Origin: Hyphochytrium catenoides
Taxonomy: Eukaryota; Protista; Hyphochytriomycota
DNA length: 64,000 bases
Direction: 5' to 3'
NCBI GenBank assembly: GCA_900088475.1
Contig: FLMG01000116.1
Location: 1-64,000 of the forward strand
The position numbers were made by a program, and so were the translations under genes. Of this stretch, positions 26,652 to 44,262 are shown piece by piece; position 1 is the first letter of the stretch, and the number at the start of each line of letters is the position of its first letter. The notes beneath the pieces are model-generated. The model saw only the letters and a list, made by a program, of their open reading frames with translations, was not told where the DNA came from and did not search any database.

Positions 26652-29600
26652 ATGGTCTTCGAGGCTGCACTGGTTGCCGCGTTGCGGCGGTTCTTGGGCT
26701 CAGTAGTTGACATTGACCTGCAGCAGCTCCAGCTTTCTTTATGGACCGGTAGATATGTTCATTCCTTATGTCTTCTTTCCTCTCTGTTAGCGCCTTCTGT
26801 CTTCCCGGAACGTTATACAACCAACCTTCGTTCTAGCTTATGCCTGCCCGACTAGATACCTTTATTCTTTCGCTTGTGGCTCTTCCACCTCATCACCCTC
26901 TCTTCTTTATTCAGGAGACCTAGCGCTGGAGAACGTGGTCCTGAAAGGGGATCTGTTGGCAAAGTTTCCAATCCCTCTGTCTTTCCTTCAAGGTAGTACG
27001 AGATGAGTTTACTCTTCTCTATTAATCCAACATGCTCTATGGTTGTTGCGGGAGCTCTATTTAGCTCTCCGTCCAAACATTTGCTTCCGACCTGCCACTT
27101 AAGGAGGAAGTTTGTCTGCTCTGTGGGTCCCACGGTCTAAAGTATCGGCGTTCCAAAAAGCTTGCTCCGGAGATGAAAGCCATCTGCGTCTCCATCCCAC
27201 TGTCAAATTTACTGCTAATAGCTCTGCACTTCTTCTGCGGTCTTTTCTCTGGGTGTCCGCTTCTCCTCCTTTACTTACACTCTGCCCTTGCTATAGACTT
27301 CCTGCTAGTATTCGCGTTCGTCATCGGACATCACCTTTTTTCGACTAAGATTTTCCTTTGTAGGCTCTATAGGGCATCTTCGTCTTGAGATCCCATGGCT
27401 CTCACTCTGGAAGAGTCCTGTCGTTATCACTGCTGAGAAAGTTAGAATAGAGCTGGAGACATCGGCCTCTTCCACTCGCACGTCGCCCGTGCCCCCAAGC
27501 CCTGCAAAAGTAAGAGTACTCTTTCAGCTAAAGTGACATGTACAAGGAAGGGTAGAAAGTGTAGGGGTTAGCGCGCTAGAGTGGATCTTCTTACAGCAGC
27601 CTGAAATCAACAAACACAATATTCACTAGGGGTCGAAGCTACCGGGAGAGGATGATACTATGCCTGGAGGTTAGTCTCTAACACTTGTATGTGCGCGTTA
27701 GGTTACTCTTTCCGTCGCTTTATTTGGCTATCCTTTCTCTATCTTCGCCTCTGAACATTGACGTTCCTCGTAAGAGTTGCACTTCTATCGTAAGCTTCTT
27801 ATAAAGTCAGTTTATTAATCCGTCGAACTTCCTTCCATCGCCAGCTCCGCCTGGCTATCTCAACCGCCTGATTAGACATGTTATCGAAAACATCAGGTTG
27901 GAGGTGAAAGATGTGTCTATCAGTCTCTTTCAAGGCGGGTTATTGGTGACCGAAGAGGTAACGTTCGACAGCTATTCGCCTCTTGTCTCCCTCTGTAAAT
28001 CATAGACTTACGTTCAACTATTGCTTCTTTGTTTATATGCTTCTTCCTTTTTATGCGACGTCAATGTTCTAACTGGATGGCTTGCAGGTTAGCGGTCTGG
28101 CTTTAGTATGGGACTCGTTACGCGTCTATAAAACTGAGGACGGCATTCAATCAAAAAAGGTGGGTTGGCTTCCTCCTCTCTTTTTTGAGTGCCTTTATTG
28201 ATAAAAAGTGCCTGGGTTCTTCTTGATTTGTTCTCCAGATAGCTTCGGTACGAGATATTGGTCTCGTCTGGAGACAACCAGAAGCTAGTGATGCTGGGAC
28301 AGACTTTATACTTTATCCTACCACCATTCTTTTAGAGGTAAGGACGGCTTGAGGGTAGAAGAAATAAGTTGATGAAAATATCTGAGAGACAAACCCATGC
28401 TTGGAGTATCAGCGGACCTAGGAATGAGTAACTTACTGGTTCGCCGCAGAACCTCGACGTGCTGGTTATGCTTAGGTGTGGTCGGAAGAGGCTGGTAGAT
28501 GGTGAAGATAGTCCTAAACGACAGTGAGGCAGGGTATCGCGTCACTCTCTGCTGCCTTAACTCTTCAGTCTTCCTTTACCTTTAGAGCACAACCAACAAG
28601 AAAGAAGACCTTGAGGGAGGAGACCAGACCCAAATGAGAAACATTACTATGTCAGTCAATGCAGAAGAAAAGCTAAGTTCCAAACCAATGCGAGCGAAAG
28701 TCAGCGAAGAGCAGCTTCTAGACCTGGCAAACCTCGTGGAGGAGCTTTGTAGCAGTTTGCGCCAAGAAGATGATGGAGAGGAAGAGGAAAGTGAGGAGGC
28801 GACTTTTTCCCCACCAAGGCCTCGGAGTGTCCTTGAAGAGTCTTGGCTCCAGCTGGACCTATGGACTCACTTCTTCTCCTCTATTGGCGCTCCTAGTCCT
28901 AATAATAAAGGACGGGAGGACATAGCCTCTCAGGTCTCGAATGATGCATTGAATGGAGAAGGCCTTGACGAAGGCGATCTGGCTATTGAGACTAGCTTCA
29001 AAACTAGGGATCTGGAGTTCTGTCTGTCCATTGTTTGCGGACTTGAGCTGTCTCTTTCTTGTGGTACATTGCGCTGCAAGGAGGGCGACCAAATGCCGGA
29101 CGAGGAAATGAAGAAGAGCTGCAGAAAACTTAACAAAGAGCGAATACTGCTTGCTAAATTTGGATCCTTCCACCTTTCCTACCTGGATTCCTCTCTGCTT
29201 TCATCGTTCTCGATGAGCATTATGTCTCTCTCTGTTACTGAAGACGGATCGCGTCCTTTATTCCACACGAGGAGTGAGGAGTTTGAGGCAGTCATGGCCC
29301 TGTTTTGGGAAACGCCCAAGCCTCTCTCGCCTCATAGAAGAGAAGCTTCAGCAAGCCTCTATCTAGGACCAAAGTACAAGGCATCGTTGTCTGCTTTCAC
29401 AATGACTATTGATCCTCTTGTCCTGGAAGTACTCTCTCTGCTGTGTGACATTTCCCTTAGAGTAATGGCACCTTCTCCTCAACCATCGTTACGACAGCCA
29501 TCTTTTTCCTCTACACCGTCTCAGTCTTCCTTGTCGCCTATTTCTTCCCTGGGATCTCTGGAAATTTCTCTGGGAGATATGACCTTCTATTTTCCTGTTA

Positions 29601-32600
29601 GTGTATCAGAAGCCAACACAACCAGATACGCCATATCCCTCGAGGAGATCCGAGTAATTTCGGACAAAGAGTGTCAAAATGGAGTTGAAGCAGAGGAAAA
29701 ACTCGAGGGGCAAGGGAGCATACGAGGGCTTCAGATCAAGATTGCGTCCTGCAGCGTCTTCCACCAGAAGTGGAGCTCAGAGCGACGCACCTGGGAGGCA
29801 AAAACCAGTCTCATAACAGGCCTGTCGCCCTTGGTCCTGACACTGAGAGAGAACCTCACAGGCCCTCATTCCCCGTCACCAAACTCTTCTCCTTCTCCTT
29901 CTGAGACGGACGGGGTCTGTCAGCATGTCTTTGGATCAAGCTCTTCTTCACTACCTTCCTTGGCTACAGAGGAGCAGCAAAGAATCAATCTCACGGCTCC
30001 AGAGGTCTTTGCAGTATCTCTCTCCGTCATGCTCTCAGACGTGACTCTTCATTGCACGGATGAGCAGTTATGGCAAATATCTTGGCTGATAGGCTCTTTT
30101 GTCGCTTTCCTTCCAACAAAGGGCCTAAAGCGGAAAGGAGGGCCAAAACAGCCGAAGGGTCTGGATATATGTCAGACATACGGGACTTGCTTCGACCTCT
30201 GCAAAAAAGAAGTAATTTGCGCTGTGTCTCACCTTAAAGTGCACCTCTCTGTATCTGAGACCTTCGCTTGGGCGGAGGATGTATGCGCTTATAAGCTCTC
30301 TTCCTTACCTACACATCACTCTTCCTCCGTCAGCTTCATTTCGCCCCTTCAATATGAGCTTGAGCTTGGAGGACTGCAATGGCGAGGAACCGATTGCTCT
30401 CATGTTCAGGAAACAGAGGTGAAAATAGATTTTTTAAGCTTGTGTGCTAAGAAAGAGGCATCATCTGGAGGTATGGCTAAGCCGGGGCTAAAGAGAGAGG
30501 GAGGGAGAGTGTCGAACACTGATATTGATGAGAAATCTCACACTGGTCAAGGCCGAAATGTTGCCGGGCGATGTCTGCTGTCGTTGGGCTCCCTATCAGG
30601 TCCTGGTCTTCGCGTTCGAGGCTCAAAGTATCCGCGAAGGACTTTCAGTCAAGAACAGGGTCTAACGGTTGCTGTCGGTACAGTCTTTGATTCCCAGGTG
30701 AATCTGGGCGATCTGAGAGTTGGATTGGAGCCAGAGGTCACTTTTAACCTTTGCAAAATTGTTGCAAGATCGTTGAGCCTAGCAGAGCTCAGCACAAAGG
30801 TCAGAGTCAGGAGAAGCGAGAAAGCCCGATCCACGAGGAAGAGAAAAGTGAAACATCTCAGTAGTCAGTCTTCGGCAGGCGAAAGGTTCACATGTGAGCG
30901 AAACCCCTCGAGAGTTTCCGCATCCCTCTCTGTGGTCTGCTCCTCGACTGACATCCGGGCACTGGTAGGCGAGCGACAGCTATGCGCAGTCACTGGAAGT
31001 AGGCTTAGCGGCACTCTTCTCGTTTATGATGGGATCAGCTGTTGTTCAGGCTGTGTTGCTTTCGAAGGGCGAGGGAGCTGGGAGGAGATTGAGTTGGTAG
31101 ACCTTTCCGGCGTCAATGAGTTACATCGCAACATCATCTCCTGGAGGGGAGCCGCCAGAGAGGAGGACAAGCACTATCCGATGCCATCCATAGACTTCTC
31201 CATTTCTTCTTTCTGCTCTCATGCATCCGACTTTCCCGGGTATTCTCCTCTGATCTGTGTTCGGGCGGGTAACTTCTCCCACAAGGTTCTGTACCGCTTC
31301 TATCGGGAAATAGGGAACTTTGTAGGGTTGAGATTGCTGCCAACCGTCCTCTGCTTTGGTCAAACAGATGGAGAGGAGGAGAGAGTTTTGAGAACCATAT
31401 TAGAGAAGCTTGGAGCTTGCGACCTGGTACTTAGAGGCTGGCCAGAGGGCTTATCTATGGAGAAGGGCCCATCAGGCAGGACGATCTGCAATACTGAATC
31501 TCTTCTCACATCGCAGCCTTCCCCCAAAATTGATCTTCTCTTCCACGACGTTCTAGTGTATCTTGTCGAGGGGTCCAGAGCCCCAGACTCTCTCATATTC
31601 TCCATCCAGAGGCTTGAGGCTTGGACTTGTGGAGCATTTGGAGATACAAAGTCAAAGTTTCTTCTTCAGGGACATTTCCCTGACGAAGATCTAGATATTT
31701 TTCAGGAGCCAGACAATAATCCTGACGACTTCAGATATTACCTTCAGAAGATTAAAGAAGGCTATCGGCGAGAAAGAAGGGTCCGGATGCAAAGAAGGTT
31801 CGAGCTATCAACCCTCCTCGCAGACTTGCTGGCATCAAACAAGAGGACAGAGATCGAAGGGGAGCAAGAGACCGAAGAGCAAGACGGAGAGGCCTTAGCT
31901 CAAGACAGCACAGGAAGATGCGACTTGGATCAGCAGATATGTGCGCTCGAAGAAGCTCTAGAGAATCTGAATCTGGAAATCAAAAGTCTAACGGAACAAA
32001 TAAATGCGGACGGAGAAAACCATGATTCTTCCCTTCTATCGCCTCAACTCCTCGACCCAAAGCGAGACGTCTTCATTGAGGAAGAGGAGGATGACAACGA
32101 TGAAGGCTTCTACGATGCTGACGATGAGGAGCAAGGTCCGGCAAATCTAAGGAAAGAGGAAAACAGGATGGAGTTTCTAGCATCGCGCGTAGAAATATTA
32201 TCTGCCGCATCCTCTTCGGTTATTTCTCAGCTATCTTGTATAGCCGGGTGGGTGCATTTTGCACAAACCCTCCGGCAGCCAGACCAGGAGGAGTCGATGT
32301 CTTCTTTCTCTTCCAATGCATGCAAGCAGGGCATACACTCTCCAATTCTGCACACAGGCCGAGAGGAGAGCATCTCCTGCTTGTCGTCCCCAGCGATAAT
32401 GTCCAGGACATCCTCACCCGGCTTGACAGATCTTGAACTTTCGTCTTCTTCCTTCTCATCCCCGAGGTCCTTTGGGAGAAGGGCAACCTCTTCCTCTTGT
32501 CCTCGCCAGGGACCATTGTCCCAGTTTCCGTCCAACAAAAAGAGTACCCCGCTGATTCTCTCTTTTAGCGTCGGCCACTTTCCCCTGTGTCTTACACCTC

Positions 32601-35600
32601 AACAGTTGGAGACTCTCTTGGGCTTCATCATGAGGAACTTAAAGGAGTTCCCACATCTATGTCCTGATCCTCCCTTATCTCTCCTTTTCTGCACCCTTTG
32701 CAAGGGGCACCACTACGCTCACCAAGATTGCAATGCTCCATGGTTCCTTCTTTCTCTCTATTTTCCGTCTGCTACACTAAGTCTCGTAGAAGAGTACCCA
32801 GGTAGGGAAGCTCAGGACGGGGAAAACAAAGCAGGTGAAGGCATGAGCGGGCCCTTCCCGCCGTTTGGGGAGCTGCAGTTCGAGCAGTTGGAGATTTTAG
32901 TGCAGCAGAACAGCAACGATGTCGCCCAGTTAGCTGTGTCTGCAAATTACGTACGGGTACAGAGTCGAGCCCTAAACGTCCCACAAGGCGATACGAGTAT
33001 TGCTGATTGGAGAGAAGTCTTTTCTCCTCTTACGTCAAACCGGAGACAGTTGTTCTATCGGCAACTCTCGTCATGGACCTCATGTTCCCACTCAATTCAT
33101 GTCAATGACTCTTGCGTCAGCATCCTCCCGCCGCTTATGGTCCCTCTATCTCTCTTCTTTACAATCGCTCTAAAAAATGTTCTAGACAAAGCGAGAGAGG
33201 AACAAGGGCCGTATGTCGTTCCTGCTACGCTTTTCAAAGACAAGGAGACAGAGAGGACCAGGAACAACCAGACTCATGACGAAGGGGGCTCTAGCGTAAG
33301 AGGCTGGCCAAACTTCGATCTAACCTTGGACTTATTCATAGACAACACGCTCTTCTGCTTGTATCAAGATCCTCAAGGAACCTCCTCGAGGTAAATGAGA
33401 GGGGCGTTAGAGGCATAGTGACCGTTTGATCGGAGTAGGCCGACAAGAGACACCAGGAGAGAATCATCACCGATACACCCGGACTGGGTCTGAGTGATAA
33501 CTCAGTTACAAAGCAATAGCTTGAGGCGGTCAAGACGTAGAGATTGTATCATATGCTCGCCCTAACCTCTTTTTTCGGCTGCTGTCTCTTTGATCCCCTA
33601 AGGGTACTTTGTATCCTTTCTTGCTTAGACTTACAGCAGCAATGGCTGGATGAGGTGAAGCAAAGCAACCACTTTGCCATCAAACAGAAGAAGATATTTT
33701 TCTCTTCTTTCCCAGATCTGCAGGTAACTCGGGTCACTACTTTTCCTGCCTATATGACCTCCGTGTTGCCGCTTCGGTATGGTATGGCCCTAAATTCGTT
33801 GTCTGGCGGGTGACGTCGAGCTCTCACACTCTTCAACTTTTCTTCTACACCCTCTTTGACTTTTCTTCTAACACACCTTCTTTGTAGATCGAGCAGTCAG
33901 TCGCATTAGCAAATGAGTTCTCCATCGCCTGCGACTATGAAATTAATGTCAGCCGAAAGGACGGCCTCGCAAGTGAGGGCATGAACGAGAAGGAAGGAGA
34001 GGCTCAAATGGTGGCCATTGAGAAGTTTTCCTTCCTTCTCCACCCACTGAAGCTGGCTCTGTCTTACCGCGACTGTCTGCAATTGGTAGATATCCTTGAT
34101 TCCGTAAACTTATCTCTGTCGCTTGTGACACAAGACACAGATGAAAAAATCCAGAGAGGCGCCGCCGATCCTTCTCCCCTTCCTTGTCAAGAGGACCCTA
34201 CAGATATCAGCATTATGCAGCAGCAGACCTTGGGGCAGGTTGGTGACATCCGCCTGATACTGCTGGAGGACGAAAGAGATGTTCCTCTGTTAGAGCTCTT
34301 TGTAGAGAGTATAGGGATAGAAAGCGGCAGTTGTGGAGGAAACACTGCCCTTTCCCTTGATGCATCAGCCTCACTCTCTGCCTTTAACTCACGGAATAAT
34401 GGCTGGGAGCCGCTGCTCGAGAAGACGGCCTTCCAGCTTAGGTTGGCTGCTAGCAACAGGGCAGAAGATCCAGTTCAACTTGTTCTCTCTGTTCCCTCGG
34501 TTATGAACCTCAACCTCACACAAACATGGGCCGACACTCTCCCTCGCCTCCTATCAAATCTGAGGTCCGACGAATCAATTATTTCTCCGTCTCTTTCCAG
34601 CGGTGTCCATATCGAGAACTCAACAGGCCTTCCCATAGAGTTTTGCCTGAGGCAGGGAATTCGTGACGTAATCCGCGGGAGATTGGAACACGATCAAAGT
34701 GCTGACGCGATCTTGCGTGGCCAGGAAGAGGATTTAAAAAGGAAGAGGAGATCGGCCGCCATTGACTCTCTTTTACCTTCAGCACCTCTATTCCAGCAAG
34801 AGGCGGCTGCTTCTAAGCAGACCCTTGCCATTTGGCTTAACGACCGAGAGTGGGGAACAGCTTCTCCTGTTGCTATCAGCAACACTGGCAAATATGTCTT
34901 ACCTGTCCGGCGAGCAAAAGTGAGACGGCAAGACGACCTCCAAGAGGTGGCTCAGGGAAGGAGTCTTAACCTCTTTCCCGGCACGTTAGTGCTGGATATC
35001 AGCCTCAATCAGGGTGACGGGACTAAGGTCCTGAAGATACTGTCTCCTCTAGTCATTTCTAATCAGACAGACATTCCCCTGCAGCTTTGGGCTTACTCAC
35101 CGCAAGGGGGAGGGCGCGTCGAAGAGTGGACGGTGGATGCAGGCGAGTCTTCCACAGCCCCTCTTTCTGTCCTCCACGTAGAAAACAAGGTCAGCATCAG
35201 ACCCACAAACTCCACTGACTGGGGACCCTTACTCAGCAGCTTGAGCCAGTTGCGGGGCGAGAAGATACCTGGTAGCCGTTATCAAACGGTAGCAGTCTGC
35301 CCCGTAGCCGCAGGGAGGGAAGAGGATAAAGCAAGAAATAACACAGAGGAGGAAAGGCAGTTCATTTGTTCAGCTCTCCCTTCCTGGTGCTGTGTAGCTG
35401 TGGCTGTCGAAAGCGCGCTGGAAGAGGTCCCGATAGCTGATGGTCGTCTAACCTCGAAGATAGCTTTGACTTCCATGGATGGAAGGGACGGTACTGCCAA
35501 GAGGGACAGAACGCCTAAAATAAGGCAAAAGCAGAAGGAAAGCAAGATCGTATCAAAAACGAGTCTTACATCAGTTTTCTCCACCAGTCGCCCATCTCTC

Positions 35601-38600
35601 TTTACATTGGTCCTTCTACCTCCCGTTCAACTCATCAATGCTCTTCCCTTCGTTGTCAGTTACCGATTCTGCTGCCATGAGAGGCATCTGCTCCTGGCGG
35701 AAGGAATAGTGGACGTAGGGAAAACGTTGCAATTGTGTCAAGTTGAGATGGGAACTGTTCTTTCACTTTCCATATCTCTTCCTGGTTATGACTGGAGCGA
35801 GTTTACTCCCATTACCTCTCCTGCACGACTACATGGGTTCCCAGACTCAGTAGGCAAAAGTAGGGATCTCGAAGACCGGAAAGCCTATAAGATTACTCTT
35901 AGAAGGCGCGTAGAGAGCCATTTAGACGGGAGCGTAAGAGAGGATGAGCTGTCTCTCCTTCTCAAGAGAGAAGGAAGGCTTCTTCGTCTAGTTGCCCCGA
36001 TCTGGCTTGTCAATCGAACCTCTCTCCCTGTTGAGTTCAAATCAGGATCGCAGATTACTCCTATGACTCCTTCTAGAAGAGCTTCCAGACGCGTACTCGA
36101 GAGAGAAAGGTCAGACAGGAACCGGAATGGAAGACAAAAATTGTCGGCTGCACTTGTTTCCAAGGGCAGTATGAAGCGCGTTTCTGATCAGGCCCCTTCT
36201 ATTCTCATGGTCGTGGTGGAGCAAGCAGAGTACTTGCCTGATATGGCGCTGGTAGGGCGACAGGACCCCTTTGTTCGAGTTTCTCTCTTCTTACCCGCTT
36301 TCCGTCCCTCCAAAGTTCAATCTGCCCTGGAAAAGGGGATGAGACCCCGAATTCTCTATAAGGCTGAGACCCGTCCCTGTGTCGCAGGGGGTTCTAGGCC
36401 TCGGTGGGGGCCTCAGCATAACTGCAGCCTCCTCATACCTCTCTCTGGAGAGCGCGATGTCGTGAACCAGGGTAAACTTCTGGTGGAGGTTCTCCATCGA
36501 ACAATCGTGGGAGAAGAGCTGCTAGGATGGTTGCAGCTAAGTTTGGCACAGATAGGAAGTTCTACGGGCGACATGGACCAACCCCACTGGTACTCTTTGT
36601 CTCCCTCTCCTGCTCATCAAAATAGGGGAACAACGGCAAGAATTGTCCTTTCTATCCACATCAGCTCTAGTCAGCGGCCTCCGATCAATACGAGTGAGGG
36701 GAAAATAGGGCCAGGAAGTAGCATCTCTCTCTCAGAAAGAGTAGGGGCGGATGGAGGTAGCATGCAAGACGAAGGGAAAGAAGCAGCTATGCCATCCTCC
36801 GCAGAAGCGACAAGACATCGGATCTCCCTATACCTGGCTCATCATATACAGAATCGTCCACCTAGGAACATCCTTATCTCCAGAGGCATCCTCACACCTC
36901 TTTTGTCGCCCACGATAGCTAAGCGGAGCGCTTTCCTTGCCGCCAAACTAGATTTGCGACCAAGCAAGAGGAACCTTGAGGAGAGAGGCATTCTTGTCAG
37001 GAGTCGACCGCTCATCTTCCTCCGCATCTATTTGCCTCATAACCGCTTTCATTATGTCTCTCTGTTTCTACCAGAGGATACCGTTCTTGCCGAGGCAGTT
37101 GAGCGGGCGCTGATGGTCTGTGGCCTGAGTTTCAGTAGGCCCGACCTCTATGTCTGCTTTGAAATCACCACAAAAAGTTGGCCTCTTTCCCGAGACCCCA
37201 CAAAACAAACACAGCTGACAGCCATGGTTGCCCAATTCACCGCTTTGGAACCTGCTGTTCCAGTGTCCGAGGATCATCTTCCGGCCATGCGGTGCGTGGG
37301 TAGGGAGTATGAACTGACGTTGCCTTTAGCAATGTGTAATGTGGAGAACGGGCTGCTGTTAATGCATAAGGCGGGTATTGGGCCTTTGCTTAATCGCTCT
37401 TCATCCACAGCTCTTGCCTTGCCAATGTCATGTCCCCTCATGCTGGAGCAAGATACAGACAGTAGCGAGAACTTTGCAGTGAAGGAGGTAGTCCTCTTCC
37501 CTCTTGGCAATGAGGAAGAAAATAAGGCCAGGCTATCTGTCCGCCTTCCAGATACGCCATGGAGCCGCCCATTTCCTCTACTCTCGGAAGCAGGGGTGCT
37601 CACTCTCTCGCAGAGACCAATACCAGCAGGTATGGAGGTTGTCCAGCGTACAGAAGAACTGCAGCCAAGCCTCAGAAAGTACCAGTTCGGCGTCCAAACA
37701 ACAGAGGGAGAGGGCATATTCTCAGACTCTCTAATAGTGTCCTTTATGCCCCGCTACCTTCTTCGCAATAACACGTCGCAGGAGATACGTCTACGGCAGT
37801 ATGGATCTCGACTCATTTCCTTCATGAAGCCCGGCCAGGCCCAACCATTCCATTGGGACGACAGGACAAAGGAGGTAAGGAAAGGAGTACGTGATAAGTA
37901 ATTCCTGCAACAGTGGCAAACGTTGAGTCCTTGAGTGCTCAGTCGATCTTGTGAAACTCTTTGGGGGGCATCCGCCACAAATGGCGTTCGTGGCTCAACC
38001 TGCTCTCCTTAAACGATCGACTTGCATGTCCTCGTCCTGACTGACAACTGGTTGCCCAGGAGTCGCTTTCAGTTACTGTAGGCAAGAAAGTCTGGCAGTG
38101 GAGCGGGCACTTTTCCCTTGATGGTGTGGGCAGTATATTCCTCCTTTTGAGACCGGTGCATCCCACGGCCCCTACCTCTGCACCGGGGTCGTTCAGCCTT
38201 CTACTTCAAGTGAGAAGAGAGGTAGCTGGGAGCTGTCTCCTCGTCTCTTTCGAGCTCGGGGATGTACGCTTTCCACCATATCGCATAGATAACAAGACGT
38301 CATATCATCTCAAGTATAAGCAATCCAGGTGAGCGGGCTTGGGAGCTGCCGATTTAAACTCCGCAGCTGCTCCAATTACTGATGAATGGCGCTACGCCTC
38401 CCATCAAACAGTCTTGTCTCTAGCATCCACAGCCCATCACTACCCCTCGGCTACCGATTAGTTCCGGTTCAGCTCCTTCTTCATACCAAAAAGCATTCTC
38501 TAAGACTCTTAACTCACCTAACCTCCCTCGTTCCCCTTCTGAATCTTTCCGCCGCTGGTATTCACCGTCGCTGAAGCTCTTCTCCGGATGATACTGGACC

Positions 38601-41600
38601 GTGGGATGACTTGGGTCCTAAAAGGTGAGCTACTGTGCCCTACTAAACCATGAGAGATGGAACGACGCAAAGCATAGAAGATCTTTAGCTTACATGACAA
38701 GACCAGGGGAAGAAGGAACGGGAGACGGGCAACAAAATTAGGTTTAGACTTTGGACCAAATATAGTCAACTATGAAGGAGGGTGATGGCATTACGTAGAA
38801 CCAGTTTATGGCACCATGATCGACGGAGGCCACTTAGTTGACTGTGTTGCCTACGTCTGCCTAGATCAAAGCCATATGCTTGGGAGCATCCCAACAGCGT
38901 GAATCGAAGCCTCTGCATTCGTTTCTTACAGGTGAAGGAGTGCTGTCGACCTCTTAATCGCCCGTTGAATTTTCCTCAATCCGATCTTATCTGGCTCCTC
39001 TTGCTCTTCGAAGCCCCACCTTTACGTTTGACGTGAAAGTAACGTTTTAGGTCTTTCTAAACGTACCAATGAGACCCCCTATGGTGAATGTCCTTCCTAT
39101 TCAGCCGAAATCCTCCCCGTAGGTTGCGGATGCGGGTCTGGAGAGCTACCAGTCCTATAATTTTAGCTTAGATGAGGTCGTCGAGCATAAGGTAAGAGAA
39201 AGGCTAAGCTTCACTTCCAGATGACCTAAGAGTTACTTTTCTGTGTTGTGCTCTGTCCCTCCAAGCCATCTCGCCATTTCAAGATACTGCCTGGCCTTGC
39301 GATGCAGCAAAGAGATCTAAACCAAGTGCTTTCAGCCTCCTCCTGCGAACAGCCGGCTCTCTCTTAGCCACCTTTTCCCTAAACTTCGCTAACTAGCTAC
39401 TCACCTTCTAATCGAATCCGCTCATCACCTCCCTCTTTCAGACCTTCAAACTTCAACGAAGTCTTCCCTCATTCAAAAACCTTACAAAAGAGGGCTTTCT
39501 TCTAAAAAAAGACGAGTCGCTCTCCTCCATTTCGCGCTGGCAGCGGCGCTACTTCCGTCTCCAAGGAATAAGCCTATACTACTTTAAGAGCAAGGAGGAC
39601 TGGGAGCTGAGGGGAGTGATCGATCTTGTGACGGAGGAAATGGGGGGTAGTTTCATAGCTGTCTACATGTTGCCTCCCTCCCCTAAGAGGAGAGCTCGAA
39701 GCTTCTTCCCTGGCCCCGCGCCCTACTCACTCAAGGGTCGGCTGCAAGGCTTAAGGAATATCGTCGGAGACGAGCGGGTGGGAAACGTAATGGCAGCTCG
39801 AGAGCGCAGCGAAGCGGGAGCCGAGCCTAAAGCCTCCTTAAATTACCTACATGGCTTGCAACATGCGGCCGAAATTCTTCGCAGCTCTTATTTGGAGGTC
39901 CTCCGCGAACGAAACGCGGAGATGTCTACCAGGAGGGTGAGGGAAGGAGATAAAGAGAAGACGGTGGAAGGACAGGTCTCCCCGCATGTGGTAATGGAAG
40001 GTTCAGAGATCGTCCGTCTTCTCCTTGCTAAAAGGATTGCACCAGCGAGATCCTATGCGATAGACATGGCCAGAGATCTTCTGGAGTGTGGCCTACTGGA
40101 AGAAAGAGGCGGAAAAGCAAAGGATAGAGATCTGACGGTGGAGGAGGAGGACAACAACTTTAGAGAAGGCGGGGCCTACGAAGTGCTTCCGAGCATTGTG
40201 GCGCAGGATCTGCCTACTTTCTCCAGTCATTCAAGGGCTAAGGGATTGTCAAATCGCTTCTGTATAGTGACATCAATCAAGACTTCCTATTTTACATGTC
40301 GTGACTACGAGGAGGCTCTTAGTTGGGTACAGGCCATCCAGAGAGCCTCCCATGCAGAAGCCCAAGAGGTACACTTCTTACCTTGAATAGCACTAACGCT
40401 ATCTCTGGCTCAGGAGAGGAATTCCTTCTTTATTTCTCCGACTCCCTAATGTACTCTGCCTGGTTCTACTGCGCTGGCCATCGTGAGAATACTTTCAAAA
40501 GTCTCACTGGGCCTTGTTCCTCGTTCTACCGTTAGAATGTGAATACGTCCAAGTCGATCGTTGGGGATACGCTTCACGACCGAGTCCGCACCAAGTCCTT
40601 CATTCGGGCGAGAATCAGAGCTGATGGACCCACCAAGGTTCTCGAGCTCAATGAGGTCGGACTAGACGATGCTGCTGAACAAGAGTCTGTGGACGGCAGA
40701 GGAGAAGCAGATGAGCATGAAGAAGCCACGATAGGCTCAGAAACAGCTACGTCACGATCAGTGGGAGGTTCTCCTTTCTTCTTCCCTCGAGGGACTATTC
40801 ACATACTCTTGCAGCTCGACTCCTTTGGAATATCCATTGTTGACCAAAGGCCCGAGGAGCTTCTTTATATGAGCCTTCATAACATTCGAGCGCTGGCCTC
40901 CGTTTCAGCAGCGAGGGCAAGTGTCACTCTGTCAGTGAACAAATTGCAGATCGACAATCAGTCGAGAAGCGCAATATACCCAGTAATCCTCTACGTGGAT
41001 AGTGAGCCACAGAGGAGGAGAAGAAGTGGCCTAAAAGGAGAAGACGGAGATCGGGCGGCTGGGACTTTCGGGTTCTCCTGTGCTGACTGTGAGATGTGGA
41101 GCGAGCAAGAAACGTCTTTTCACCTCTGCTTCTCGTTGCTGCGTGGAAGGAAGGATCTATTATACTTTGAGCACTTGTCTTCCTGGTTGGCTCCTCTGCA
41201 GTTGTGCTTGGAGGAAGACGCTATGGCGACTTTGCAGCAATTCTTCGCCTCGGTAGGCAACCACTCCGGTCTATACTCCCATCTTCCCGTCATCCGTGCA
41301 ATTAGCATTCTCTTGCCTCTTCAAATCTATGTTAAACCAATAACTATTTTCCTGCACGTTGTGCTGCTTGCACACCTGTGTTCGACTTCTTTGTCGCCAT
41401 AGGATTCATGTTGCTACACGATATCTTTGTAACGTAAGGTCTACAATGTCTAGAGGACTCTTGCTCAGTAGACTCTCCACATGTTATATCGTCAATCATT
41501 CTCTAGGGGAATTATTCCAGAGCTTCGAAGTCCCTTACAAGTGACCACCCAGAGTGTGATGACGAGCCCGGAAGAGGACAAGGCCTGCGACGAGGAACGT

Positions 41601-44262
41601 TAAGCAATGAAAGAAGGTCAAGGGCAGCATCACTGGATGCGGACATATTGAAGGATTATCTAGCGACGATGCAAGAAAATGTCTTCCTTGGCATAGACAA
41701 CCGTTTTCGATCAATTGGTCCATATCAAGCAGAGACGTGGACATCATACTTCTCCTTCCTCCATCTTCACCCCGTGTCCCTCTCACTAACGTACAGAAGC
41801 AGCAGAGGGAGTTATCTTATGGGCCGGGAGGGCGTTGGGGATGAGCTCATTGAGAGGAGGCGAAGGCTAGGCGGAAGAATGTTTCGCCTGCCTGCCCTTG
41901 ATGACGCTTCCATACAGTTTGGTACTTTAGTGCTAGAGCATGGCTTTGGGACGTTGCAGGACACGCTCCAAAGCGTCTGCCGCCACTATACTGGTCAAGC
42001 GCTGCGGCAAGTTCATAAGGTCATCGGATCAATGGACTTTTTAGGCAATCCTGTCAACTTCTTCGGGCATATGGGCGCTGGAGTAAGTACATGTACTGGC
42101 TCTCCTCTGCTTCAGCCACTGGCAGTCTTGACTTTAAGTTCTATCGTCTTCAAACCTTCGACTGCGTACATTGTGGCATCATAGACCCGCCGCCGTACCG
42201 TCAGTCCCCCAGCACCTCTCTTCCATGACAGGGTGTTTCATTCTCCTCATGGGTCAAGGCCCTTTGATTGTTATAAGCGCTTCTCTATTGTCAACCTAAT
42301 AGGACCACTCTTCCGTCAGGCTTCACCTAACTCGATGACTCTCTGCAATCTATATTGTTATAGGTACGCGATTTTATTCAGGAGCCTCTTGATGGCCTCA
42401 AAAGTGGCGGAATAGGATTCGGGCAGGGGTTAGCTAAAGGCACTGCGAGCCTAGTTCAGAATACGGTGGATGGCACATTGGATGCTGCCTCCAAGATCTA
42501 TGGCAGTTTAGGCCAGGGGTTAGCCTCTCTTCTCGATGATCACTACCAAGCGAGGAGACAGCAAGAAAGAATGGAGCCAGTTGGCAGTCTGGGAGAAGGG
42601 CTTAAACAAGGCGCAAAGGAACTACGTCTTGGGCTAGTAGAAGGATTCTCGGGCATGTTTCTTGCGCCTATCAGGGGAAGTCAGGAGGGTGCGATGGGGC
42701 TGATGAGAGGAGCAGTGCAGGGAGTGCTTGGAGTGGCCCTCAAACCGACCGCAGGCGTCTTTGACTTCGCCTCTCGCGCCTCTCAGGGCCTCAAGTATCG
42801 GCCACAATTACAATTGCAGGGCCATCTAGGAAAAGAAAGGGTTCGTCCCCCTAGGGTCTTCGGGCGCCATGGACAGCTTAAGGAGTTTCGCGAGGAAGAT
42901 ACCGTGGCTTTTGCTCTTCTACGGGAGGTCCTCGGTGGAAGGTTTAGTCGCTCCTACATCGTGTTCCATTCGCAAATTGTCCAAACGCTACCGATGGTGG
43001 AAGTCGCTGCTCGGGAAAGGAGGGCTGCAAAGGAACGGGATCAGGGCGGATACCAAGGAGGAGATCTTTATCAAGTTACCTTTCATCCTGGCCCTATCGG
43101 TCTTCAGTTGGAGACCGACTTCTACCAGCAACACATTGTAGTAAAAGGCTTTAATCGCAGTAAGGACGGCTCTTATGGTCAGGCTGAGCTCTCTACTCTT
43201 ATAGAGACTGGGAACATTCTACTCAGTGTTGGAGGTATTGCGGTTCAAGACATGCGATTTTCTTCCGTGATGTCGCTGATCAAAGGGGCTGCAAGGCCAG
43301 TAACCCTGACATTTGAGAAGCCAACTCGGCCAGGTCGAAGAAAGGGAAGAGCACGCACGGTCTTTTCGTTAGGAGCCGTGGAGAGCGGTCAAGTCCAGTC
43401 CGGGGGGGAAGAGCCATGTTCTGCCAGGAACCCAACACTGGAACCTTCAGCACTAGTTCATTTGACCCACTGGCTGATTGTCACTGATACCCATGCTCTG
43501 CTCATCAACATTAGTGACGTTAGCCAGGTCTGTGTTGACTGGATAACACCCTTACAGAATGTCATTGATGTCTCGTGCGATCAAGAGGTTGAAGCGTTGG
43601 ATGTGAGGGTACGTGTACCGTTAACTGCGGGATCCAGTGGACCAATGGTTCGGCCCTCGTCTGAAGCTATGGCTATTAGAGACAGGAATCTGCATCTTTT
43701 CCAGGTCGCTATGTGGCAGGCCTTCCAGTCGAAAGCAGCCGCTGCGCAAGAGTTCTACCCGTCTGAGGCGATCATTCAAGGGCCGCTGCGGAAGAAGACT
43801 GGGCTACGGCTGTTGAAACGCTGGTTCGTGGTTAGTAAAGGCTGTCTGTACTACTTCACCGATCCTGACCAGAAGAACTTAAGAGGTATAGTTCCACTAG
43901 CATACCTAGAAGTGACTCCAGACCGAGTGAGCACAGAGGGCTTCTCTCTACATCCGCGGGGTGATTATCCGCTCAAGGTGGTCCATATAGAGGATAGAGA
44001 GGCAGTTGTGCAAACCTTCAAGGGCATTAAGCTTTATGCCGACGACAGCGACCAGCGAGATCGATGGGTAAGCGTTCTGCGGTCAGTCTCTCTTATGCAC
44101 GAGGCTTCGGGCCAAGAGGGAGGCAGTACGGACAGTAGTAGCCAAAGCTCCACCCTTCTACGCGTTGGAGTAAGAGGCGTGCCATCATCACAAGTTGAGT
44201 CTCTGATCCTGAACTTCAAGCAGTGTCTGACCTCATGTGAGCTAGCACGCTCTCTCATCTGA
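26652..44262 (+). CDS. VPS13: VPS13-family bridge-like lipid transfer protein with many accessory domains (about 4,700 aa, my estimate)
   Basis: Chorein-N start MVFEAALVAALRRFLG…LQLSLWTGDLALENV…GSIGHLRLEIPW; FNSRNNGWEPLLE; VAB-type repeats (IENSTGLPI, PRYLLRNNT, PPYRIDNKT, YAWEHP); ADGPTKVL; LQIDNQ; VIGSMDFLGNPV; ATG_C helices; RVRPPRVF. The exons I checked join in phase. Confidence 0.95.

Follow-up and report, generated by a model that had tools for sequence, protein, structure and literature searches.

A VPS13 protein of Hyphochytrium catenoides with RPEL-type motifs inserted in its VAB region: a candidate link between lipid transfer and monomeric actin

VPS13 proteins are bulk carriers of lipid between organelles, and the chief unsolved question about the family is what determines the place and time of their action. 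The answers known so far are adaptor peptides that the VAB region binds and a small number of accessory domains. An association with actin organization has long been recognized for yeast Vps13 and human VPS13A, and to our knowledge no direct interface with actin has been described for either. Could such an interface be built into a VPS13 protein itself? The question is raised by a VPS13-family gene of the hyphochytrid Hyphochytrium catenoides, located in the first 64,000 nucleotides (nt) of contig FLMG01000116.1 (assembly GCA_900088475.1; hereafter the window), whose VAB region carries an insert with two motifs resembling the RPEL motifs of MRTF and Phactr. The reading that we develop here, in which these RPEL-type motifs bind monomeric actin (G-actin), has in our estimate a probability of about 0.5; that they also gate the modules beside them is less likely.

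The insert spans ∼375–470 residues, within a stretch of ∼470 residues that has no VPS13 match, and falls between positions 326 and 342 of the VAB profile, around the fourth VAB repeat (Table 1). Its modules follow in the order C2 domain, linker, RPEL-type motif 1, a 10-residue spacer, motif 2, the residues VRSRP and a segment, FLRIYLP...YVCFE, that resembles a Ras-association (RA) domain. A stop-free frame of 1337 codons on the + strand (33888–37898) contains both RPEL-type motifs as well as the end of the VPS13 middle region (Pfam VPS13_M, amino acids (aa) 77–183; residues of this open reading frame, or ORF, are numbered from the Met at 33981). Because the middle region, the VAB repeats and the insert share one unbroken frame, the placement of the insert does not depend on how the exons are modeled. 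Upstream, the VPS13_VAB matches cover profile positions 55–130 (∼aa 335–412) and 174–326 (∼aa 525–696). The VAB parts match the solved VAB region of Chaetomium (C. thermophilum) Vps13 (PDB 7u8t, E = 1.4e-7), and the part that resumes past the insert aligns to chain residues 453–526 of that structure. The insert is coding sequence, read in the same frame as the VPS13 parts that flank it. When scored with a codon-usage log-likelihood trained on the gene's other exons, 10 of 12 windows of 150 nt favor this frame, and by our own arithmetic a run of ∼433 codons without a stop across the insert would arise by chance with a probability of ∼1e-9.

Both RPEL-type peptides lie within 36810–37005. Scanned as a 70-aa pair, they match the Pfam RPEL family (PF02755) in two stretches with 39.7 bits (E = 3.5e-10), compared with a gathering score of 23, and the pair scores 35.4 bits when the whole ORF is scanned; motif 1 also passes the gathering score on its own. 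Among all PDB sequences, phmmer with the segment ranks first the RPEL domain of Phactr1 in complex with actin (4b1z, E = 9e-4; also 4b1w), in whose alignment motif 2 reads RSAFLAAKLDLRPSKRNLEERGILVRS, and the RPEL chains of MKL1/MAL come next (E = 0.27–0.57). Language-model neighbors point the same way: all 30 of the 30 nearest ESM-Atlas clusters of a 74-aa pair carry PF02755 (0.90; 194–205 shared features), including some whose recorded members are mostly fungal. We give this line of evidence less weight because the recognition value of the query, 2147, is just under the 2300 mark. The initial annotation of this stretch had read two RPEL peptides inside the VAB region of a VPS13 and had named a search with the RPEL hidden Markov model (HMM) as the result that could overturn it. 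The family match above the gathering score, the PDB match to actin-bound Phactr1, the language-model neighbors and the presence of VPS13_VAB matches before and after the insert in the same frame bear out both the identity of the peptides and their location.

The residues that touch actin in a known complex allow a closer comparison. In the crystal structure of MAL RPEL2 with actin, contacts are made by L118, K121 and I122 (helix 1, hydrophobic cleft), by the invariant R125 and by P126, and on the subdomain-3 ledge by L131, I136 and L137 (PMC2583105). Seven of these eight residues are kept in motif 1 (L952, H955, I956, R959, P960, L965, I970 and L971, with His replacing K121) and all eight in motif 2 (L986, K989, L990, R993, P994, L999, I1004 and L1005). 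As a pattern, the actin contacts occur exactly twice in the six-frame translation of the window, both times at the RPEL-type motifs, against a mean of 0.03 in shuffled sequence (n = 100), and the DNA form of the pattern gives two matches against none in 100 dinucleotide shuffles. The Arg-to-Arg distance between the tandem motifs is 34 residues, not far from the 38 of Phactr1; the RPEL repeat length of MRTF is 44 residues. With the HMM, phmmer against the PDB, the language-model neighbors and the structure-based residue reading in agreement, the RPEL match is, as a match of sequence, more than chance. On the same comparisons, we regard actin binding by the motifs as evenly balanced between yes and no.

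Several results weigh against this reading, and we set them out with the explanations that they favor. The canonical core RPxxxEL is incomplete: both motifs have its Arg, Pro and Leu, and in place of the Glu motif 1 has Ile (RPPRNIL) and motif 2 has Asn (RPSKRNL). Because the Glu is absent from both, we refer to the motifs as non-canonical RPEL-type. Motif 2 scanned on its own reaches 17.1 bits (E = 0.0044), under the Pfam cut-off of 23, and five residues separate it from the predicted strand 1 of the domain that follows. All of this would suit motifs that descended from RPEL motifs or converged on them and do not bind actin; they could instead lengthen the RA-like domain by a helix, serve it as a linker, or engage an actin-related or unrelated partner. 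Myocardin offers a precedent, with RPEL motifs that pass the family model yet have very weak affinity for actin (PMC2583105). However, the myocardin defects sit at exactly the contact positions that are intact here, and neither motif has lost any of the hydrophobic contact residues, the invariant Arg or the Pro. The Glu itself is dispensable in MAL, where E130A leaves the actin affinity of RPEL2 unchanged and E86A in RPEL1 has a small effect (PMC2583105); its loss therefore counts against canonical membership and not against actin binding. Motifs that do not bind actin are the alternative that survives best, and we give it a modest but real chance of being correct.

The search for relatives was also unfavorable. 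HMMER comparison of the 441-aa cassette with 1.84 billion representative proteins found no relative of the RPEL/RA part, and the only two matches, both weak (E ∼3e-4) and both in the C2 region, were to proteins P0001 and P0002; the former is a low-complexity repeat and probably spurious. Word-index searches with the cassette region, the whole ORF and the VAB part were blank among proteins of 718–2285 aa, a size range that puts the full-length VPS13s of relatives out of reach. In JGI metagenomes, none of 28 matches to the peptide pattern was confirmed, and a degenerate DNA pattern in which the two motifs stand in tandem at a set distance had no match. In these searches no protein resembled the cassette as a whole unit to a detectable degree. 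This does not mean that other VPS13s lack RPEL motifs, since motifs this short would not on their own reach significance against so large a library. The cassette is so far known from one gene in one genome. This isolation, the low-complexity flanks and the shortness of the motifs (20–25 residues) would fit a chance resemblance within an insert that evolves fast, is specific to its lineage, is largely disordered and serves no particular function. Against this stand two adjacent same-frame matches at a typical spacing, a Pfam E-value of 3.5e-10, a contact pattern found twice where 0.03 would be expected in the six frames of 64 kb, and the agreement of three independent methods (HMM, phmmer against the PDB and language-model neighbors). 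We consider chance resemblance improbable.

The presence of the segment in the mature mRNA is deduced from the open frame alone, and the many introns of roughly 110–250 nt in the gene, together with two 150-nt windows of weak coding score in linker regions, would be compatible with its being spliced out, constitutively or in most isoforms, but the C2 and RPEL sequences are encoded in the 1337-codon open frame and 36183–37505 holds only three donor-like sites, none of which pairs with a clear acceptor such that the motifs would be cut out and the frame kept, so that this explanation is very unlikely.

The last group of adverse results concerns the FLRIYLP...YVCFE segment. Its top ESM-Atlas clusters are RA, at 0.93 (184 shared features) and 0.92 (173–184) with queries of 186 aa and 96 aa, followed by FERM_f0, Kindlin_2_N and PI3K_p85B, all of them ubiquitin-like beta-grasp folds. 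Models made with AlphaFold (AF2) from the single sequence without an alignment are of low confidence (predicted local distance difference test, or pLDDT, 36 for 246 aa and 52 for 111 aa) and give the segment a strand–strand–helix–strand–helix order. Neither the RA family HMM (PF00788) nor any other Pfam family matched 36990–37250 or 36948–37505 at E ≤ 10, phmmer found no RA chain in the PDB at E ≤ 10, and a Foldseek search with the low-pLDDT model gave no match at E ≤ 1e-3. With VIA-align, the same kind of model reached its best Z of 5.4 with designed proteins, and the scores for ubiquitin-like proteins were within noise (Ddi2, 4.2; kindlin-1 N-terminal domain, 3.7; SUMO, 3.1–3.4). An RA-type beta-grasp domain at this position is on balance favored, and we treat it as a lead; that it binds a GTPase we purely infer. 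In a separate matter, PDB matches to NDUFS4 (E = 0.5–2) cover the linker after the RA-like domain and were set aside as noise. The initial annotation had called the segment RA-like: the stretch is present as written, and its RA identity has neither a Pfam nor a PDB sequence match behind it. The same annotation placed the RPEL pair correctly inside the VAB region and overlooked the C2 domain that lies upstream in the same insert.

That C2 domain, scanned alone within 36183–36680, scores 24.2 bits against Pfam C2 (PF00168; gathering score 22) over profile positions 2–104 of 104; in the whole ORF the score is 16.9 bits. Its sole library match outside the window is the multi-C2 protein P0002 (E = 3.6e-4), which supports its classification as a borderline member of PF00168. 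P0002 is 1239 aa long and has several C2 repeats, after which come, by eye, cyclic-nucleotide-binding-like and kinase-like regions. Compared by eye with the Ca2+-binding consensus, the C2 domain of the insert appears to have the loop-1 aspartates, and those of loop 3 appear to be replaced. The Ser/Gly/Pro-rich linker that follows it is probably disordered. A strongly basic stretch (RRASRRVLERERSDRNRNGRQK...; 36069–36200, + strand) separates the C2 domain from the last VAB match before it and could be a membrane-binding or nuclear-localization-like patch at the boundary of the insert.

If the RPEL-type motifs do bind G-actin, each would be expected to hold one monomer, bound as in MRTF and Phactr in the cleft that separates subdomains 1 and 3, and their occupancy would track the pool of free actin monomers. 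A 42-kDa actin bound to motif 2, so close to strand 1 of the RA-like domain, would probably hinder that domain in binding its partner. By analogy with Phactr1 and MRTF, actin held next to the RA-like and C2 modules could mask or expose them, the C2 domain being tethered through a flexible linker. The insert would then amount to a targeting switch that is gated by actin and built into the adaptor-binding region of a lipid bridge, and whether this end of the bridge is recruited to a membrane or a GTPase would follow the local pool of unpolymerized actin. G-actin-dependent control of targeting is plausible by this analogy. The specific gating model, in which actin governs the targeting of VPS13, is tentative, and it is similarly doubtful that the protein senses actin monomers directly, with the RPEL motifs and the RA-type and C2 domains tying its recruitment to the local G-actin pool.

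Were it true, the arrangement would be a concrete and testable design for coupling lipid transfer to the state of the cytoskeleton, and the bulk flow of lipid at a contact site would depend on actin dynamics. RPEL signaling would extend past transcription (MRTF), phosphatase targeting (Phactr) and RhoGAPs. An RPEL sensor would also be present in a non-opisthokont, so far in one gene, which would imply an older origin, transfer or convergent evolution. RPEL repeats have been annotated, without experimental proof, in ascomycete rhodopsin fusions (bioRxiv 10.1101/2025.06.26.661701). A connection of yeast and human VPS13 proteins with actin organization is reported (PMC6361151 and PMC4496357). In the literature searched we found no link between RPEL and VPS13, apart from a single co-occurrence of the two terms in a yeast alpha-synuclein study, and no paper that joins RPEL, Ras-association and G-actin. 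This agrees with the initial annotation, which knew of no RPEL motifs in characterized VPS13s. RPEL and RA modules are also not among the accessory domains listed in the available part of a VPS13 survey (PMC7613979). Accessory domains in VAB loops are already known; what is new here is the combination of C2, RPEL-type and RA-like modules inside the VAB region of a VPS13.

The rest of the gene is that of a VPS13 protein by its Pfam matches, with a chorein-N domain (VPS13_N), the middle region, VAB repeats, VPS13_C and a C-terminal PH domain in one gene (Table 1). Its central exons are large. Exon joins were considered for 33888–38323. The large exon that encodes the insert is bounded by an acceptor at 33887/33888 (...ttgtag|ATC) and a donor at 37874/37875 (GAG|gtaagg). 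An intron from 36694 to the cag at 36803 was considered and rejected (110 nt; it shifts the frame). Later exons encode the end of the VAB region, a PH domain that a weak DEP match splits in two, and VPS13_C with the C-terminal PH domain. The interrupted PH domain, at 39412–40383 (+), is matched in two stretches (Pfam PH, 55.4 bits), an N-terminal half at aa 25–73 and a C-terminal half at ∼aa 281–312 with ∼200 residues between them, and it is between these halves that the DEP match falls (16.4 bits; cut-off 32.7). Between VPS13_C and the C-terminal PH domain, aa 256–316 of the 42364–44259 frame give a weak PDZ match (E = 0.064, 14.1 bits; cut-off 23.2), which may be a further accessory module or noise. 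In the middle of the gene, an open frame of 1602 codons (28586–33391, +) abounds in Ser/Glu low-complexity runs and has no Pfam family match, whether scanned whole or as three pieces; presumably it is a very divergent or expanded repeating-beta-groove region.

Table 1. Features of the VPS13-family gene and of the insert in its VAB region (positions in the window)
Feature	Position	Strand	Basis and remarks
VPS13-family gene	~26652..44259	+	VPS13_N, VPS13_M, VAB, VPS13_C and PH matches; extent approximate; stop follows 44259
Small 5' chorein-N exons	VPS13_N at 26791-27003 and 27309-27533	+	Pfam VPS13_N, profile 30-93
Large exon, 1329 codons	33888..37874	+	End of VPS13 middle region, first VAB repeats, insert, further VAB repeats
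VAB repeats upstream of insert	34983..36068	+	Pfam VPS13_VAB, 32.2 and 42.4 bits, cut-off 22.6; PDB 7u8t alignment
C2 domain (borderline), first module of insert	36201..36599	+	Pfam C2
Ser/Gly/Pro-rich linker	36600..36809	+	Read from translation; no Pfam family match
RPEL-type motif 1, HRISLYLAHHIQNRPPRNILISRGIL	36810..36893	+	Pfam RPEL 27.1 bits alone; contact-pattern match 36834-36892
RPEL-type motif 2, RSAFLAAKLDLRPSKRNLEERGIL	36924..36995	+	Pfam RPEL 17.1 bits alone; phmmer to Phactr1 RPEL in 4b1z/4b1w
Probable ubiquitin-like beta-grasp domain, RA type	37011..37250	+	ESM-Atlas neighbors; C-terminal boundary uncertain
VAB repeats resuming past insert	37494..37874	+	53.4 bits; profile 342-453, aa 1172-1298
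Next exon, VAB continued	38060..38323	+	Profile 455-531, after 185-nt intron 37875-38059
VPS13_C and C-terminal PH	42364-44259	+	Pfam

How does this insert compare with known systems? Insertions in VAB loops have precedents in the VPS13 survey (PMC7613979), which describes a ricin-type lectin in VAB repeat 6 of VPS13D and, in plant VPS13M1/2, a C2 domain in the first loop of VAB repeat 1. As in those proteins, extra folded modules, a C2 domain among them, are placed in the VAB region of a VPS13 and presumably serve partner binding or targeting; the differences are that the insertion point here is around the fourth repeat and that the block has several modules, including RPEL-type and RA-like ones. 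The RA and other Ras-binding beta-grasp domains (afadin, RalGDS and RASSF) are the nearest language-model neighbors of the RA-like segment, whose predicted strand–strand–helix–strand order and hydrophobic pattern LRIYLP...VSLFLP...AEAVERAL...GL...LYVCFE match those of RA domains. It differs from them in having no HMM or PDB sequence match, the relationship being suggested by language-model neighbors.

The RPEL-type motifs themselves have two points of reference. With MRTF-A/MAL (2yje, 2yjf, 3tpm and 3tpq) they share the two-helix motif and the contact positions, whereas MRTF-A/MAL is a transcription coactivator with three motifs and a weaker direct sequence match than Phactr1. In MRTF-A/MAL, G-actin occupancy controls access to an adjoining signal (PMC2583105 and PMC2964165), and the latter source describes actin as masking a nuclear import signal inside the RPEL domain of MRTF-A. 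The Phactr proteins (Phactr1–4; 4b1z and 4b1w) have tandem RPEL motifs with a short spacer, as here, where motif 2 reads LAAKLDLRPSKRNLEERGIL. They are animal cofactors of protein phosphatase 1 (PP1) with four motifs, in contrast to the two motifs, with binding predicted, of this lipid-transfer protein from a protist. The spacing is 38 residues in Phactr1, counted from the phmmer alignment, versus 34 here, and Phactr1 has Glu where the motifs of the insert have Ile or Asn. The likeness to Phactr1 extends to the setting of the motif, in that an RPEL motif stands directly beside another binding module, as motif 2 does beside the putative RA-like domain; in Phactr1, RPEL3 overlaps the RVxF site for PP1, so that G-actin and PP1 compete (PMC7599070).

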